DNA of 63,842 bases, filler included, from Octopus bimaculoides (taxonomy: Eukaryota), in NCBI RefSeq assembly GCF_001194135.2. It is 6 parts of 6 records of this genome, joined end to end, with 100 filler letters (N's around TTAATTAATTAA, not from the genome) between each part and the next. Parts side by side here need not be neighbours in the genome. Positions count along the whole stretch, not along the records: positions 1 to 23,061 come from NC_069004.1; 5 more parts are not named here. One strand, given 5' to 3'. Both the position numbers and the translations under genes were made by a program. This document shows, one piece after another, positions 10,142-21,399 of this stretch (the first letter of the stretch is position 1; every line of letters starts with the position of its first letter). Under the pieces are notes generated by a model. That model saw only the letters and a list, made by a program, of their open reading frames with translations. It was not told where the DNA came from and did not search any database.

Positions 10142-12193
10142 TCGGTTTTTTATCCTGTCCTTGTTTACGTTGCTTCTTCTTTGTTACTTTACGGCCCCTT
10201 GCTGTTGTCATTTCAGGAGTAAATTCCACTGTATTCCATTTTGGAATCTGTTTAGTTACGAAATAATCATCTGTTGAAACCCACTTATTAGAATCAGTTC
10301 TTTCTGTTGTGGTATATGTATCAACAGTTTTTGTCTGCTCGACTGGGAACCGAGAAGATGTTCTCGTCACTGATTCTCGTGGCTTACATCCATACCCTGG
10401 AACACAGCTTGTAGAAGAATGTTTGGGTTGTTCAAGAACAGTAGTAGAGTCATAGTCTTTGCTTTTTCTGACTCCTGCTGTTGTCGGCACGTTAGGGTTG
10501 GTCGGAAACACGACCGGTGTTGAATAGAGTCGTGTCGATTCAAGGACTGAATCTACATCTTTAGTTTTTAATACATGGTGAGTCGTTGATGAGAATGAAG
10601 GCCGGTACCTTTCACTGCTGCGAGATGGCAGCAGGATGTGAGAGGAAGAAGAGATCATTTCTTGCCGTTGAGATGATAGTCTGTGAAGCATCGATGTTAA
10701 GTTCTGCTTATGACTGCTGATATCTCTGCTTGCAATTGGTAAACGACTTTCAGACGAACTAGGCATTAAAGTCGAATAATCACTTCTATGTGATGACGGC
10801 CTGAGGTCTGTGTACATATGATCAAATGTGTGAGTATGTGATGGTTTGGGGTAGAAACTATCCCTGCTGCTTGATGATGATGTTGGTCTAATTTGTTCTG
10901 ATGTCCGATCGACTCTTCTATGTGATTGTTTAACCCCTGTCGAGAAAAGATCAATTGATTTGGTCAATGGCTTAATTTCTGATGACGTTTCAACTCTGCC
11001 GTGTGATGGTCTAACATGTAAAGATGAATAACTCATGCTGAGTGATGGTCTAATGCTCACGGGATGCTCTGATCTATGATATGACTGATCAACAGAATGT
11101 GAAGGGTTAATAGTCACATGAATGTTGTCATGCGTTGTAATAGAATCAATCACATGCGATGGTTTAAGCTTTATAGATGAATGTTCATATAGTATATGAG
11201 TTGGTTTAAGAGGTACAGACGAGTATTCGTGCCTTTCGGATGATTTGTGTCCAGTAGGCGGATGGTAAGGTTTGCTTCGAGAAGAATCGACATGAAAAGA
11301 AGATGAAGAAGGAATTCGACTCCTTGATATATTGATTTTATATGATTGTGATTGGCTGATATGAGAATGTATTACACTGCTGACTGGGAATTTCAAGTGT
11401 ACAGAAGACTGATCAACACTGCTAAATGGCTTAAACACTGTAGAACTGGATCCATCAAGTGTCGGGAATGGTTGTCTATACAGAGAAGAATGGTTGCTGA
11501 TATGTGATGGCTTAAGACCAATAGATGTATCATTGACTTTAAGAGATGGTTGATGTATTATATGCGACTGACTACTGCTATGAGCTGGCTTAATATCAAC
11601 ATAAGAGTGACCACTTCTACTCTGTGATGGTTCCACATGTACGGTGGGGGATCGACCATCAATTTGTGAGTCCACTTCAGAATGACCACTTTTGCTACTC
11701 GATGGCTGAAGAGATACAGAAGAATGACCACCAATTTGTGAATCTATATAAGAATGACCACTCAAAATACGTGTTGGTGTTGGTCTTACTGGTATCGAAG
11801 AAGAAGAATCTCTGGAACTCTGTGACGCTTTATGTGTTACAGAAGCACGTGATGAAGACATGGTAACAAGCGGTAATTCAATTGATGTCAATAAGTCAAT
11901 GGGGACCATTCCGCTTGGCCAAATGACTGGAGATACAGTGCTCGAGCTTGGCGTTACCGTTTCTTCGTATGTCGTACTTTGTGGAACATTCCGTATCGTA
12001 ATTTCACTCTCTTCGAAATAAAACGTGTTCGTGTCCGTCTGGTCAACATACAATGTCTTCAGAACCGGTGTGGATTCTCTAATGATGCTGCTCTCTGATG
12101 GCTTCAATGTTATTTCTGATGTAATATCTTCATCTTCGTCAATATCTTCCTCACCAGATCCAGACCCAGACCCAGAACCATAATATTCCAGAT
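10142..12193 (-). CDS. DAG1: Dystroglycan coding exon 3 (aa 491-1175): Ser/His/Thr/Pro-rich mucin-like exon, 2052 nt, phase 1-1
   Basis: Acceptor cctttaatcttgcAG|AT CTG GAA and donor CCG A|GTAAGT at 10141. A 674-codon stop-free ORF covers it, and phases match both neighbouring exons. Confidence 0.85.
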
Positions 12194-12269
12194 CTGCAAG
12201 ATTAAAGGAAGAGGAAAATGGATAAATAAAAATTAATTCATTAAAACCATTTTACACTTTAAACTGTAT

Positions 12270-12950
12270 TAATGACTCTTCATATCATTACAGTTACTAT
12301 GATGGCATAAATTATGTAAATGACTATTTGTATCATTACTATAACTGTGATGGCATAAATTATGTAAATGACTATTTGTATCATTACTATAACTGTGATG
12401 GCATAAATTATGTAAATGACTATCTGTATCATTACTATAACAGTGATGACATAAATTATGTAAATAACTTTTTGTATCATTATTATTGTGATGGCATAAA
12501 TTATATAAATGACTGTTTGTATCATTACTATCTGTGATAGCATAAATTATGTAAATGATTATTTGTATCATTACTATAACTGTGGTAGTATAAATTATGT
12601 AAATGACTATTTGTATCATTACTATAAGAGTGATGATATAAATTATGTAAATAACTTTTTGTATCATTATTATTGTGATGGCATAAATTATGTAAATTAC
12701 TGTTTGTATCATTATTATATCTCTGATAGCATAAATTGTGTAACTAACTATATTGTTACTGTTACTATGATGACATAAATTATGTAAATGTCTGTATCAT
12801 TACTGTAACTGTAATAGCATAAATTACATAAATAACAGTATTGTTGCTGTTATGTGATAGCATAAATTATGTAAGTAACTGTATTGATATTCTTACTGTG
12901 ATGGCATAATTTATGCAAATGGCTTTGTATTATTGTTGCAATGGTTTAAA
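12270..12950. repeat. 48-bp minisatellite filling most of dystroglycan intron 2
   Basis: Unit GATGGCATAAATTATGTAAATGACTATTTGTATCATTACTATAACTGT starts at 12301, 12349, 12397 and 12445. It continues as 45-48 bp variants that degenerate toward 12950, about 14 units in all. Confidence 0.92.
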
Positions 12951-13087
12951 CTCAGTAACGAGTCCCGTTGTTTTATTTATGATTGCAAAGGAAACAAACC
13001 TCTTAACTATATGGCATGTCTGCTACCAATTATGCAGTGACTGATTATCAATTAAAGAAAAACAGGTAGATCGTATTATGGTCTTAC

Positions 13088-14348
13088 CTGTTCCAGAATC
13101 TTCATCTCCATCAGTGTCTGTAGCTAGTGTTGGTGTGGCTGCAATTAAAGGAGTCATAGGCGGTTTAGTAATGTCTTTTCCCAAATTGGTTGGTGGAGTT
13201 ATAGGTTCTTCTGTGGTAAATTCACTGAAACGAGACACGTCTCCTGATCCAGAGATTTCATAGATACCTGTGTGATACTTGCTGCTTTCATGCCACTTTA
13301 CCATGGTGGTATATCTATCTGGCTGGCTAGTTTTTTTGGGTGTGTATTCCGAATATGTGAATGAGGATGTCGGATGCAACTTATCTGCAGACACAGTTTT
13401 CGATTTCTCAAACAGACTTTCTGAATGGGCCGGCACTGTGAAACTTTTTGTTGGTTCGACTTCAATTACTGATTCTCTTGAAGACACAAATACAAGACTT
13501 GATTCTTTGGTTGGAATAATTTTATCCGTCATATGATCTCTTTTAGTCTCATACTCTTTCGATTCTAATTTCTGCAAGCTTTTCAGTAACTCAGTTTTAA
13601 GCGAAGCAGAGTACAGTGACGATGAAGACTTGACGATCTTAGTTGCAGGAACCACCTCTATTTGAGGAGTTGGCGTTGGCGTCGAGTTTTTGGGTATTGC
13701 ACGTTTTTTACGTGACCGATGTTGTTTGGAAGGGTTTACCAATGCCGATATATACCATCCTACGACATCGTAACCAACCTCCCTAGTCAGACGCCCACCT
13801 TCAACATTGTGTTGCAACACTTGCATGAAAAGACTCACCTCTTTAAACACGCCACATGGTACCCTCCATGTTAATTCTGTCACATTTGGAAGCACCGCAT
13901 CGGTGTTGCCACGTCCAGATGCCAAGATGCTGAAACTTTGTGATTTGTCTTGCATTGAAAAGAGTTCTTTGCTTGCCGTAATTGTTATCAATGTCTCATT
14001 GATATCAAGGAAATCGGCAAGGTTTCTCATAATATTATACCTGGCCAAGGCATCCAACTTATACAAATTAACAGCGAAGATTAGAGTTGTCTGAATAAGA
14101 TTAATACCTTTGTAACAGGTTTTCTCTGGTTTCTTCTTACTACTGTGTTCATGGCTCATATAATATGGCTTTACCTCAAGGTAAAAAATATCAGAAATGA
14201 ACTCACACTTCTTCGCTTGGTCTGATAAAGTTATTTTAATATACAAACCAAATCCATCATGCATCGTTGGTACGGCTATCAACTTCCGTGTGGTTTCTTC
14301 AAAGGTAATCCACTGTGGCAGCGTTTGATTTTGAGATGCTGCGGTTAC
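13088..14348 (-). CDS. DAG1: Dystroglycan coding exon 2 (aa 71-490): rest of N-terminal domains, furin site and start of mucin-like region
   Basis: Acceptor ttttattttacAG|GTA ACC GCA gives VTAASQNQTLPQW, resembling human VSAAGKEALPSW at what I recall as the same phase-0 intron position. LTWRVPC and VGYDVVGWYI match the alpha-DG N-terminal domain, followed by RKKR and TPTPTP. Donor ACA G|GTAAGA (phase 1). The frame is open throughout. Confidence 0.93.
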
Positions 14349-14394
14349 CTGTAAAATAAAAGCAAAGCAGTTACTCTTTTATTCTTTTATTCTT

Positions 14395-14793
14395 TTACTT
14401 GTTTCAGTCATTTGACTGCGGCCATGCTGGAGCAACGCCTTTAGTCGAAACAAATCAACCCCAGGACTTAGTCTTTGTAAGCCTAGTACTTATTCTATCA
14501 GTCTCTTTTGCCGAACTGCTAANNNNNNNNNNNNNNNNNNNNNNNNNNNNNNNNNNNNNNNNNNNNNNNNNNNNNNNNNNNNNNNNNNNNNNNNNNNNNN
14601 NNNNNNNNNNNNNNNNNNNNNNNNNNNNNNNNNNNNNNNNNNNNNNNNNNNNNNNNNNNNNNNNNNNNNNNNNNNNNNNNNNNNNNNNNNNNNNNNNNNN
14701 NNNNNNNNNNNNNNNNNNNNNNNNNNNNNNNNNNNNNNNNNNNNNNNNNNNNNNNNNNNNNNNNNNNNNNNNNNNNNNNNNNNNNNNNNNNNN

Positions 14794-14828
<35 letters not shown>

Positions 14829-14984
14829 CAGGCTTCTTCTAGTTTCCTTCTACCTAATTCACTCACAAGGCATTGGTCGGCCCGAGGTTATAGTAGAAGT
14901 CACTTGCCTAAGGTGCCACGCAGTGGGACTGAACCTGGAACCATGTGGTTGAGAAGCAAGCTTCTTACCACACAACCACGCCTC
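14395..14984 (-). mobile_element. SINE family B, both halves around an N gap and (TA)n, in dystroglycan intron 1
   Basis: Tail half 14395-14522 and head half 14825-14984 match other copies. Confidence 0.8.
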
Positions 14985-15332
14985 AGCCTATTTTATTTAT
15001 TTTATATTTTAACAATCCCAAAAGCATAAAAAAATGAAAATAACAAAACCAACCCTTGATATGATTCGAACTCAGAATGCAGACATCCAGAACATATATC
15101 GCAAGACATCTCATCCAGTGCTGTAACTAACAATTGTATCAATCCTTGGCCCTGAACTAGTATTTTATTTATTAATCTCAAAGGGATGAAAAACACAAGA
15201 ATGATCTTAGTGTGATTTGAACTCAAAACACAAAGATCCGAAACATAGAGCACAAGACATTCTATCAACTCCACCACTTCCTTAACAAACTCAAAGACTG
15301 TAGTAAAAGACAGAAGCTACCAAATTACTTAC

Positions 15333-15542
15333 ATCGATTAAACAGTTCTTCTTGCACTTCAAGACGGTCTCTGGAATCTTGTAGACAAATAGTTTCCCTG
15401 TTATGAGCTTTTGATCTGGGATTCCTTCCAAAATTGAAGGGCAGTCATGTGCTCTGGTGAAATTCTGTACACCCCACACCAAAGAACTGCAAAGAATGGT
15501 TGATAAGAAAAGCACTGTATATCTTTCTGCGAACCACCACAT
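15333..15542 (-). CDS. DAG1: Dystroglycan coding exon 1 (aa 1-70): signal peptide and start of N-terminal Ig/cadherin-like domain
   Basis: ATG at 15542 starts MWWFAERYTVLFLSTILCSSLVWG, a hydrophobic signal peptide. It is followed by IPDQKLITGKLFVYKIP, which resembles human IPDGTAVVGRSFRVTIP (recalled). The exon ends at GAT|GTAAGT, a phase-0 donor at 15332. Confidence 0.9.
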
Positions 15543-16127
15543 TTTGTTTTGTCTCTTCTTGTCTCGGTTCCTTGTTTCGTCTCGTCTTGGCACTTGGTTG
15601 TTTTGGTTTTGTTCTGTTTTTNNNNNNNNNNNNNNNNNNNNNNNNNNNNNNNNNNNNNNNNNNNNNNNNNNNNNNNNNNNNNNNNNNNNNNNNNNNNNNN
15701 NNNNNNNNNNNNNNNNNNNNNNNNNNNNNNNNNNNNNNNNNNNNNNNNNNNNNNNNNNNNNNNNNNNNNNNNNNNNNNNNNNNNNNNNNNNNNNNNNNNN
15801 NNNNNNNNNNNNNNNNNNNNNNNNNNNNNNNNNNNNNNNNNNNNNNNNNNNNNNNNNNNNNNNNNNNNNNNNNNNNNNNNNNNNNNNNNNNNNNNNNNNN
15901 NNNNNNNNNNNNNNNNNNNNNNNNNNNNNNNNNNNNNNNNNNNNNNNNNNNNNNNNNNNNNNNNNNNNNNNNNNNNNNNNNNNNNNNNNNNNNNNNNNNN
16001 NNNNNNNNNNNNNNNNNNNNNNNNNNNNNNNNNNNNNNNNNNNNNNNNNNNNNNNNNNNNNNNNNNNNNNNNNNNNNNNNNNNNNNNNNNNNNNNNNNNN
16101 NNNNNNNNNNNNNNNNNNNNNNNNNNN

Positions 16128-16167
<40 letters not shown>

Positions 16168-16820
16168 GCGCAAACACACAAACACAAACACATACACACA
16201 TATATGATAGGCTACCACACAGTTTCCATTTACCAAATTCATTCACAAAGCATTTGTCTTCCTGGGGCTACAGTAGAAGACACTTGCCCAAGGAGGTTCC
16301 CTGCAGTGAGAATGAACCTGAGACCACATGGTTACATAGTGAGCTTCTTAACCACCCAGTCATACTTATAAGATACTATGTGCACGTGTGTGCATGTGTG
16401 TGTATGTGTGTGTGCATGAGAAAGAGAGGAAGTGAGATTTTGGTTTGGTTCTTGCAGTCTTTTAGTTTTTCCCAGGTGAAACAGAGAATCTACCATATCA
16501 AAGTATTAATTCTTTACCAAAATCTTATCATTCTTTTTTTTTTCTTCCCTCTCATTTCCTTTCATTATCTTCTATTGCAATAATATATCAGTGTTATAGG
16601 TGGGGGTTTGTGTGGAGGGTGTGCTTATAAGCCGGTTGTGTGCATATGTATATATATATATTTTGATGTATGTACGTAATAGGAGCAGAGGTGGCTGTGT
16701 GTTAAGAAGCTTGCTGTGTGGTAAGAACCATGTGGTTCCAGGTTCAGTCCTAGTGCGTGGTACCTTGGACAAGTGTTTTCTTCTATAGTCTTTGGTAGAT
16801 GGAAACTGAAGGAAGCCCAT

Positions 16821-16893: not shown

Positions 16894-16936
<43 letters not shown>

Positions 16937-17020
16937 CAAGTAAGTATATATTGTTTATTAGCTGTGAAGTTGCATAACCCGAAACCAATAATACATCCCC
17001 AATGATATGTATCTTTACAG

Positions 17021-17129
17021 ATATATCCATCAATGGAACGTCCCAGCAAAAGCTGTGACTGCCAACATGATGGTGACTGTACGTATGACATTACAGAAGG
17101 CTTGGAGAAAATTCCAGTATTCTTCGAAG
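17021..17129 (+). CDS. Candidate orphan internal exon, antisense to dystroglycan, product unknown
   Basis: Flanked by atctttacAG (17020) and GAAG|GTAAAC (17130). Two frames are open, e.g. IYPSMERPSKSCDCQHDGDCTYDITEGLEKIPVFFE. No homology recognised. Confidence 0.3.
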
Positions 17130-17450
17130 GTAAACCTTGCATNNNNNNNNNNNNNNNNNNNNNNNNNNNNNNNNNNNNNNNNNNNNNNNNNNNNNNNNNN
17201 NNNNNNNNNNNNNNNNNNNNNNNNNNNNNNNNNNNNNNNNNNNNNNNNNNNNNNNNNNNNNNNNNNNNNNNNNNNNNNNNNNNNNNNNNNNNNNNNNNNN
17301 NNNNNNNNNNNNNNNNNNNNNNNNNNNNNNNNNNNNNNNNNNNNNNNNNNNNNNNNNNNNNNNNNNNNNNNNNNNNNNNNNNNNNNNNNNNNNNNNNNNN
17401 NNNNNNNNNNNNNNNNNNNNNNNNNNNNNNNNNNNNNNNNNNNNNNNNNN

Positions 17451-17499
<49 letters not shown>

Positions 17500-17905
17500 G
17501 CATATATGTATATATATGCACACACACAATTCAGGAGATGCAAACATAGAACTCAAAATATGAGTGTATGTATATTTTTATTAATATTTACCAGAAGTAA
17601 GAGTGACACGCACATATTCATACATACACTTATATGTATACACACACACACACATATATGTGTGTGTGTATGTGTATCTTCATACACATACAAATACATT
17701 AATTCAAATATTCATAAACATATGCAATAAATATATAAACCATGTATACAGCTACACACACTTTCACACATGTATACTCACACACACACACACACAAATA
17801 CACACATACACACACACACACACACACAAATACACATACACACACACAAATGCGTACACACACACACGCACACACACACACAAACAAACAAACACCCGTG
17901 CATAC

Positions 17906-18100
17906 ATTTCATTTGCAAATTCAAAGAATTTTCATCGAGATATAAACCAACACGATGTAATCCCAATCCATCTATCACTCTTTGGCGCTGCCGCCAGCCT
18001 CCTTTCCTGCTCTCCTCCCTCCATTGCAGACCCAACCAATTCTTCGTTATCAAGTCTGGAGGCTGCCAAATAATTATTTCCTTTTCTTTCTTTTTTAATA
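17906..18100 (-). other. Possible non-coding upstream (5' UTR) exon of dystroglycan
   Basis: Unique purine-rich sequence between microsatellites, with a possible donor AAAT|GTATGC at 17905. No recognisable product and no transcript evidence. Confidence 0.2.
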
Positions 18101-20494: not shown

Positions 20495-21399
20495 GTGTGT
20501 GTGTTTGTGTTTGTCCCCATAACTTAGAAGTTCAGTAAGGGAGACCGATAGAATAAGTACCAGGCTTACAAAAATAAGTCCTGGGATCGATTTATTCAAC
20601 TAAAATCCTTTAAGGTGGTGCTCCAGCATGGCCACAGTCAAATGACTGAAAGAAGTAATAAAAGTATATACATGTCTATGTATATATATATATATATATA
20701 NNNNNNNNNNNNNNNNNNNNNNNNNNNNNNNNNNNNNNNNNNNNNNNNNNNNNNNNNNNNNNNNNNNNNNNNNNNNNNNNNNNNNNNNNNNNNNNNNNNN
20801 NNNNNNNNNNNNNNNNNNNNNNNNNNNNNNACTATCTTTCCATCTCTCTCTTTTCTACAGCTTCTACAAGTGGACTCTGGGGAGAAAGAAAAATACCACA
20901 CATTTAAGAACACCTCTTTTTAAAAATTTTATTTCACGAGCTGGGGTGTGGATGCCAGGGGAGGGAAGGTGGAGAGATACCTTAAAAATGTTAGCATTTC
21001 TTTTATTTTTATATTTCTTTTATTTACTTATTATTTTTTTTTTTTTAATTTTATTTTGCTTAAATTCAGTGATTGAAAGTTGATTATGAAATTCTTCTAA
21101 TTAGTGGAATGTACCGGTTATTACTCTTATGTTATTGCACGATATAATCAACACCCACTCTTTAATTCCTTCAGGATATACCATTTCCTGTCCCCCTCCT
21201 TTCTCCTCCTTTCTCTGTGTGTGTATATGAATATACATATATGCATGTGGCTATGTGGTAAGAGGTTTGCTTCCCAACCACATGGTTTTAGGTTCAGTCC
21301 CACTGTGTGAAACCTTCGGCAACTATCTTCTAGTATTGCCTCAAGCCAACCAAAGTTTTGTGAGTGGATTTGTTATTTGGAAACTGAAAGAAGCCATTA

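Follow-up and report, generated by a model that had tools for sequence, protein, structure and literature searches.

The window analysed here is a stretch of 63,842 nucleotides from the genome of Octopus bimaculoides (GCF_001194135.2). Its first part, taken from NC_069004.1, carries a gene for dystroglycan on the minus strand, the strand of all gene features given below. This study deals with that gene and with a tandem Ser-Gly cluster in the extracellular part of its product, from which we predict that octopus dystroglycan may be a proteoglycan. The coding region (8026..15542) specifies 1562 amino acids in a single open frame spread over four coding exons (15542-15333, 14348-13088, 12193-10142 and 9191-8026, stop included), and reading of the splice sites gave canonical GT-AG borders at every junction. 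Exon numbers refer to coding exons only; an exon preceding the ATG has been reported in a cephalopod (PMC5216574), and an untranslated exon may lie upstream of octopus coding exon 1. The Pfam domain DAG1 (PF05454, covering IG2-MAT-NU, transmembrane segment and cytoplasmic tail) was matched at residues 1297-1496 (E = 3.4e-20, 73.1 bits vs a cutoff of 23.3). The S6-like domain a_DG1_N2 (PF18424) was matched at residues 157-271 barely above its cutoff (26.3 vs 26.1 bits), an assignment backed by the same precomputed domain in the Octopus sinensis homologue. This homologue, a protein of 1498 amino acids with 88% identity, was the best of the five matches returned by the full-length search, in which word selection was dominated by the low-complexity mucin region. 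Judged by its domains and its homologues, the gene is an orthologue of dystroglycan (DAG1).

The translation starts with a signal peptide, MWWFAERYTVLFLSTILCSSLVWG (15471..15542), and contains a transmembrane helix, IIPTVIAVAIAIFIVVIILLIC, at residues 1424-1445 (8380..8445), both read off the sequence. The Ser-Gly clusters lie between the two, which places them on the lumenal or extracellular side. The C-terminus reads ...QPPPPYRLPPPYHVDNGSSYV, its tail PPPPYRLPPPY representing the PPxY motif bound by dystrophin and WW domains; the P-P-P-Y columns are invariant in the alignment, and cephalopod dystroglycans run on for 8-9 residues beyond PPPY. Beyond the S6-like domain there is a furin-type site, RSRKKR (residues 281-286), followed by AIPKNS-TPTPTP with Thr293, Thr295 and Thr297, that is, RSRKKR|AIPKNSTPTPTP (residues 281-298, 13665..13718), where vertebrates have their matriglycan threonines. 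The next ~890 residues form a mucin-like region in which Ser, Thr, Pro and His abound, and an IG2-type module follows it. The Gly-Ser site of autoproteolytic maturation into alpha and beta subunits was not found at its expected place, where octopus has K-G-A-C-Q-D (Gly1400-Ala1401, 8512-8517) and a distant homologue L-G-S-C. Argonauta has G-A at the same position, and the decapodiform-like sequences introduced below have G-T or G-A. Several invertebrate dystroglycans are without this site, which is not needed for membership in the family (PMC4582122). With G-A in place of Gly-Ser, octopod dystroglycan may escape canonical cleavage and may thus not be split into alpha and beta subunits at that point.

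The Ser-Gly cluster lies at the junction of exons 2 and 3 (13088|12193), which encodes DGDEDSGT|DLEYYGSGSGSGSGEEDIDEDED or, with the junction aspartate written out, DGDEDSGT-D-LEYYGSGSGSGSGEEDIDEDED. Exon 2 ends with GAT TCT GGA ACA G|gtaaga, and exon 3 begins with cttgcag|AT CTG GAA TAT TAT GGT TCT GGG TCT GGG TCT GGA TCT GGT GAG GAA GAT ATT GAC GAA GAT GAA GAT. The first 14 nucleotides of exon 3 (12180..12193) supply the last two bases of Asp491, the first base of which is 13088, the end of exon 2, and then encode L-E-Y-Y; Tyr494 and Tyr495 (12185-12180) are candidate sulfotyrosines. The repeat itself, G(SG)4, extends from Gly496 to Gly504 (12153..12179) and offers Ser497, Ser499, Ser501 and Ser503 as candidate acceptors for glycosaminoglycan (GAG) chains. 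Directly C-terminal to it comes the acidic run EEDIDEDED, residues 505-513 (12126..12152). A second site, SGSGD (Ser436, Ser438, Asp440; 13239..13253), is found in exon 2 within YEISGSGD, the SGSG part of which occupies 13253-13242, and a third candidate is Ser488-Gly489 in DGDEDSGT at the end of exon 2 (13092..13097). The junction, the numbering of the four cluster serines and the coordinates of the second site had been proposed in an earlier note on this DNA, and all of them were reproduced exactly when the minus strand was read again. Residues 476-525 include 17 acidic residues and 1 basic one, while a slight excess of basic residues marks exon 3 as a whole (69 D+E vs 77 K+R). The cluster is not a product of chance: shuffling the mucin-like region 200,000 times never yielded (SG)4, for which the expected count is 1.4e-6. 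A sequence search of the PDB with a 49-residue octopus peptide gave no match. Further along exon 3, at residues ~630-690 (~11610-11780), three units of about 25 residues are built around S-G-H-S-[Y/E]-[IV]-D (ILSGHSYID, SKSGHSEVD, SRSGHSYVD). They contain additional Ser-Gly dipeptides, each with an upstream basic residue and only one acidic residue nearby, and similar units are present in other octopods and in Argonauta.

Coding exon 3 (2052 nucleotides, 10142..12193) starts with the Ser-Gly cluster, contains the Ser/His-rich bulk of the mucin-like region and begins and ends in phase 1. The four genomic sequences agree (4/4) in having a phase-1 intron within the corresponding Asp codon (G|AT), five residues ahead of the first Gly-Ser-Gly, and a following exon whose length is a multiple of three, namely 2052 nucleotides here, 1878 in O. 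sinensis, 2196 in Argonauta and 1365 in a decapodiform-like genome; this symmetry represents one inherited feature and not four independent ones. For the decapodiform-like genome the exon was mapped from the exon-2 side, since it lies outside the 10 kb that precede exon 4. Skipping of exon 3 would replace the inclusion junction GATTCTGGAACAG|ATCTGGAATATTATGG by GATTCTGGAACAG|AACACACAAATATGGCTCC and was computed to leave an open, in-frame protein of 878 amino acids without most of the mucin stalk. Alternative splicing of exon 3 is thus structurally possible, but the forms found, namely the O. sinensis gene model and two transcript contigs without introns, contain the exon throughout, and none skips it. 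The idea that most GAG sites are present only when exon 3 is included presumes such skipping, which the symmetric exon would allow in frame but which the transcript-level sequences found do not support. Moreover, the conserved SGSG[D/E] site of exon 2 would stay in a skipped isoform, which would thus not be free of candidate sites.

The motif was compared with five other cephalopod sequences, comprising four full-length proteins and one genomic locus; two of them are labelled decapodiform-like on the basis of their divergence. The Ser-Gly cluster is present in 5/5. It reads DLDYYGSGSGSGSGDEEIDEDED in O. sinensis, DLDYYGSGSGSGSGDEDIDEEED in a second octopod represented by an intron-free transcript contig, DLYYFGSGSGSGSGDEDFDGEDIDE in Argonauta hians, DMPYAGSGSGSGNDEEE in a decapodiform-like transcript with 55% identity and DMPYAGSGSGSGSDEEE in the decapodiform-like genome. 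The repeat is (SG)4 in O. sinensis, the second octopod and Argonauta and (SG)3 in both decapodiform-like sequences. An acidic run follows it in every homologue (DEEIDEDED, DEDIDEEED, DEDFDGEDIDE, NDEEE, SDEEE), and at least one Tyr stands two or three residues ahead of the first Ser-Gly in all of them (for example DYYGSG, LYYFGSG, MPYAGSG). The exon-2 site is likewise kept with its acidic flanks (YEISGSGD, GVSGSGE, SMSGSGD, SISGSGD). Ser488 is not conserved: O. sinensis shares it, but Argonauta, the second octopod (DKDIIGT) and the decapodiform-like sequences lack it.

When residues 281-1175 were scanned in 15-residue windows for identity to the two most distant homologues, the Ser-Gly segment ranked first with 0.70, a value comparable to that of the folded IG2 domain, while most mucin windows scored 0.0-0.4; the runner-up, at residues 536-550, reached 0.63. 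This runner-up belongs to a second island of conservation, TLYVDQTDTNTFYFEE (residues 537-552, 12009-12056), about 30 residues past the Ser-Gly cluster, which in the decapodiform-like sequences appears as ...SESNIFYFEET. Within G(SG)4, comparison with Argonauta shows synonymous differences at 8 of 9 codons and no non-synonymous ones. What has been conserved is thus the protein motif and not a DNA repeat, and this pattern of codon change indicates that the cluster is under purifying selection. Absence of the motif from close relatives had been named as an outcome that would speak against GAG attachment; since it is present in all relatives examined, this comparison does not refute the reading. 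When exon 4 by itself or the N-terminal domains served as queries, homologue searches yielded cephalopod fragments only and no bivalve or gastropod dystroglycan, so that cephalopod-specificity within the molluscs cannot be stated.

A profile of the C-terminal region was used to reach dystroglycans of other phyla, 30 of which were labelled by cluster look-up. Unrelated giant proteins with repeated He_PIG or cadherin-like domains that entered the profile search were set aside, and the remainder were mainly arthropod dystroglycans. About 19 of 26 insect- or crustacean-type sequences carry G-S-G-[D/E/G] together with a block of 30-40 residues rich in Asp, Glu and Tyr, located 4-16 residues past a furin-type RxxR site. 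Named carriers include a stick insect, a damselfly, beetles, a moth, wasps, thrips, a tephritid fly, a barnacle, a brine shrimp, an ostracod and a mantis shrimp; RREVQTGSGDGDDYEYYDYGDD, RHRRQVDGSGDFGDDDYDYNYDD and RRQTDGSGADEVDDDYDYEYDEDDEE are examples (motif proteins P0064, P0066, P0068, P0072, P0078, P0084, P0095, P0101, P0103, P0104, P0111, P0113, P0116, P0122, P0139 and others). The motif is weak or missing in two hemipteran-type sequences. At the same position a scorpion, a spider, a hemichordate, a nemertean and most cephalopods (Argonauta being degenerate) have T-P-x-P without Ser-Gly. Threonines targeted by LARGE are missing in many phyla, and the GSG/acidic motif is not mentioned in the survey by Adams and Brancaccio (PMC4582122); the literature searched gave us no description of the pancrustacean post-furin motif. 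Soon past the acidic block, dystroglycans of insects, crustaceans and chelicerates (for example P0066, P0072, P0078, P0095, P0139) have a nearly invariant H-(P/A)-H-R-H-H-H-G-E, which could be a metal-binding element and which occurs in none of the cephalopod proteins.

The rules for GAG acceptors are well described. An acceptor consists of Ser-Gly with about two acidic residues close by (PMC7570499), and a constriction in the xylosyltransferase XT1 demands Gly or Ala at position +1, acidic flanks being generally preferred (PMC5992326). Sites are located in unstructured regions, and tandem sequons such as those of SDC4 and GPC1 are converted efficiently (PMC10570366). The octopus cluster (candidate xylosyltransferase substrate DLEYYGSGSGSGSGEEDIDE) conforms to each of these rules. 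Gly occupies +1 of Ser497, Ser499, Ser501 and Ser503 as well as of Ser436 and Ser438, and around each of the cluster serines 4-7 acidic residues are found within a distance of eight positions. No Pfam domain was found between residues 272 and 1296, the fraction of Ser, Thr and Pro in the region is 0.38, and the segment thus appears unstructured, disorder being deduced from composition and poor conservation only. On sequence grounds the cluster is in agreement with every criterion for xylosyltransferase action and GAG attachment.

The flanks also speak to the type of chain. With mammalian enzymes, acidic residues C-terminal to Ser-Gly recruit EXTL3, and heparan sulfate then overrides the default chondroitin sulfate (PMC10570366). 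In octopus (SG)4 is followed by EEDIDEDED, which corresponds to these determinants if their transfer from mammals to cephalopods is assumed. We infer that a Golgi peptide O-xylosyltransferase would add xylose to at least one of Ser497, Ser499, Ser501 and Ser503 and probably to Ser436 and Ser438 too, and that the Gal-Gal-GlcA linker would be completed on the xylosylated serines. Because a dense acidic run stands C-terminal to the serines, initiation of the EXTL3 type would be favoured, chondroitin sulfate being the default alternative; the chains would probably be heparan sulfate, with a share of chondroitin sulfate. This would make alpha-dystroglycan a proteoglycan, possibly part-time, and its GAG chains could allow additional, heparin-type binding of LG-domain proteins and further matrix ligands. 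The chains would coexist with the O-mannosyl matriglycan expected at the retained TPTPTP. All enzymes of the matriglycan pathway except LARGE2 are reported from Annelida upwards, with Mollusca and especially Cephalopoda cited (PMC8478517). Since this pathway is reported and TPTPTP is retained, the presence of both glycan systems on one octopus dystroglycan is plausible, and the suggestion of the earlier note to this effect proved reasonable, the furin-type RKKR and TPTPTP (residues 283-298) being kept at the vertebrate matriglycan position.

GAG attachment is in our view the most likely function of the acidic Ser-Gly clusters, a view held with about even confidence because occupancy cannot be read from sequence. 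The sequence, the gene model, orthology, extracellular topology, fit to the acceptor rules and conservation under purifying selection are established here, whereas xylosylation, chain type and function are predictions drawn from them. Several points weigh against GAG attachment. Consensus Ser-Gly sites are not always used. Dystroglycan of rabbit muscle is not known as a proteoglycan, and in early work it was reportedly left unshifted by GAG lyases. The rule that separates heparan from chondroitin sulfate, as applied above, was derived from mammalian enzymes. A glycoproteomic survey of chondroitin sulfate in Drosophila found no new core protein except Windpipe (PMC7185963), which bears on the arthropod motif, and three dipteran-type sequences hold the Asp/Tyr block without any Ser-Gly.

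The dipteran-type sequences hint that the acidic, tyrosine-containing patch and not the serine may be what is selected. This is the strongest of the rival explanations, to which we give roughly half the credence of GAG attachment: a tyrosine-sulfated acidic patch with a flexible Gly/Ser hinge would be the selected element and would form a polyanionic surface for ligand binding or enzyme docking, its serines remaining unmodified. TPST acts on Tyr near acidic and away from basic residues, with Gly, Ser or Asp as turn-promoting neighbours, and DLEYYGSG, situated within the 50 residues that hold 17 acidic and 1 basic, agrees with this description. The earlier proposal that EYY in its acidic context fits tyrosine sulfation is therefore borne out at this level, Tyr494 and Tyr495 being in a typical context and all cephalopod homologues keeping a Tyr two or three positions ahead of the repeat. 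Pancrustacean dystroglycans add an Asp/Tyr-rich block past the furin site, as in DYDYEYDEDDEE or DYEYYDYGDD. The arthropod data are only partly in favour of the patch, however, since about 19 of the 26 pancrustacean-type sequences do start their acidic block with G-S-G. Moreover, a hinge would not require three to four strictly alternating Ser-Gly units to survive synonymous turnover, and sulfation of the tyrosines is compatible with GAG attachment to the serines.

Phosphorylation of the serines is a weaker candidate, and we consider it improbable. Fam20C recognises the motif S-x-E, and a Golgi casein kinase of this type could modify Ser503 in Ser503-Gly-Glu505 first and then Ser501, Ser499 and Ser497 as S-x-pS (pS, phosphoserine), yielding a highly charged phosphoserine cluster that would bind calcium. 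The S-x-E at Ser503 and the hierarchical S-x-S-x-S-x-S-x-E spacing fit this scheme, and the residue past the last Ser-Gly in homologues is Asp, Glu or Asn. Asp (SGD) and Asn (SGN), found past the repeat in several homologues, would nevertheless be weaker than Glu for Fam20C, and the exon-2 site is SGSGD. The Gly at +1 of each Ser is a requirement of xylosyltransferase (PMC5992326) and not one of Fam20C. Least probable is a neutral low-complexity stretch in a fast-evolving mucin region: the imperfect 6-nucleotide repeat detected by TRF (4.5 copies, 12154-12180) in repetitive, Ser-rich surroundings makes an origin of the cluster by hexanucleotide slippage possible, but conservation and synonymous divergence led us to reject a pure slippage artefact: the start of exon 3 keeps the motif together with its Tyr and acidic run in octopods, Argonauta and the decapodiform-like sequences while neighbouring segments fall to 0-30% identity.

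If the clusters do carry GAG chains, the closest counterparts would be the heparan sulfate clusters of glypican-1 and the syndecans, which share with octopus dystroglycan tandem Ser-Gly in an unstructured extracellular segment and an acidic cluster on the C-terminal side. Peptides of GPC1 (three sequons) and SDC4 (two sequons) were fully converted to linker glycopeptides in vitro and were good substrates of EXTL3 (PMC10570366). The octopus core differs in being unrelated (IG-like, S6-like and DAG1 domains), in having four sequons instead of two or three and in that its occupancy is predicted only. Betaglycan resembles it in an aromatic residue near the site, which is a Trp at +2 in betaglycan and a Tyr ahead of the serines in octopus. 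The cell-surface matrix receptor CD44 is a heparan/chondroitin sulfate proteoglycan only with the alternatively spliced Ser-Gly exon, v3, included (PMC2199896), and the octopus exon opened by the main Ser-Gly cluster could, being symmetric, be skipped in frame. Unlike v3, it is 2 kb long and makes up most of the mucin stalk instead of forming a short insert, a second Ser-Gly site lies in the constitutive exon 2, and only inclusion was seen. Some isoforms of fly Dystroglycan lose the mucin-like region by alternative splicing (PMC4582122, PMC11550397) and thus provide an invertebrate precedent for a mucin exon of the cassette type. The introns were nevertheless gained independently, the fly exon structure is unrelated, and the cephalopod forms found here all include the exon.

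The overall plan is that of vertebrate alpha-dystroglycan, with signal peptide, IG1, S6-like domain, furin-type site plus T-P-T-P, mucin-like region, IG2, transmembrane segment and PPxY tail. In vertebrates, Thr317 and Thr319 past the furin site carry O-mannosyl core M3 and matriglycan (PMC4582122). The octopus protein differs by its mucin-like region of ~890 residues, split by two extra introns and bearing acidic Ser-Gly clusters. No report of acidic Ser-Gly clusters in vertebrate alpha-dystroglycan was found in the literature searched, and the sequences compared here are from invertebrates. More generally, the literature searched for dystroglycan in combination with proteoglycan, chondroitin, glycoproteomics, GAG attachment or dgn-1 gave no report of it as a GAG-bearing core protein. 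A further relevant system is LARGE2, which makes a matriglycan-type Xyl-GlcA polymer on proteoglycans in a xylosyltransferase-dependent manner, with the GAG linker as its probable starting point (PMC5137251). If dystroglycan bore GAG linkers, both kinds of substrate would be joined in one protein, although the activity belongs to the vertebrate-only LARGE2 and not to LARGE1, and invertebrates have a single LARGE (PMC8478517).

As LARGE2 builds a laminin-binding polymer on proteoglycans, one may speculate that a GAG linker could prime such a polymer on dystroglycan as well. This leads to a broader proposal that we regard as improbable. A xylose-initiated glycan on acidic Ser-Gly, beside a sulfotyrosine-rich block, would serve protostome dystroglycans as a second ligand-binding glycan or, in pancrustaceans, as a replacement, since G-S-G-[D/E] and the Asp/Tyr block of many insects and crustaceans occupy the very place of the T-P-x-P matriglycan site of vertebrates, chelicerates, a hemichordate and most cephalopods. 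The linker GlcA-Gal-Gal-Xyl-Ser would either bear heparan or chondroitin sulfate or prime a LARGE-type Xyl-GlcA polymer, and cephalopods would keep both systems.

Dystroglycan is the textbook example of a receptor that relies on a single unusual glycan, O-mannose-linked matriglycan, to bind its ligands, and the threonines that bear this glycan are poorly conserved outside vertebrates (PMC4582122). A conserved GAG consensus offers a concrete and testable alternative for the binding of invertebrate dystroglycan to laminin, perlecan and neurexin, and the arthropod parallel bears on the same question of how invertebrate dystroglycans bind their ligands. If octopus dystroglycan carries such chains, it would join the short list of heparan sulfate core proteins, and two glycan systems based on xylose and glucuronate would be linked on one protein. 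If GAG attachment were refuted, the conserved acidic Tyr/Ser-Gly island would still mark a functional element of the mucin stalk.

With regard to gene structure, three introns lie inside the dystroglycan coding sequence in the window, in O. sinensis and in Argonauta, and two coding-exon junctions were mapped in the decapodiform-like genome. A published survey lists the O. bimaculoides gene with a chordate-type single coding intron and with exon sizes that disagree with the present structure (PMC5216574, Table 1). Assembly gaps, seen as runs of N edged by TA, CA or TG microsatellites, are found in both flanks of the gene and in the first coding intron (1500-2300, 5850-7100, 7470-7920, 14520-14830, 15600-16200, 16900-18100 and 20640-20920), and long open reading frames in the gap-rich flanks and the first intron were discarded as artefacts of low-complexity sequence and Ns. 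ARAGORN reported no tRNA-like elements. The intron between exons 2 and 3 consists mostly of an AT-rich 48-bp minisatellite (12271-12921; about 14 copies, 79% match), in which higher-order periodicity at 187 and 235 bp is also present. Ahead of the last exon, the intron contains an 80-nucleotide inverted repeat (9400-9479 and 9571-9650), the arms of which are 83% complementary and 91 nucleotides apart, and which may be a small foldback element.

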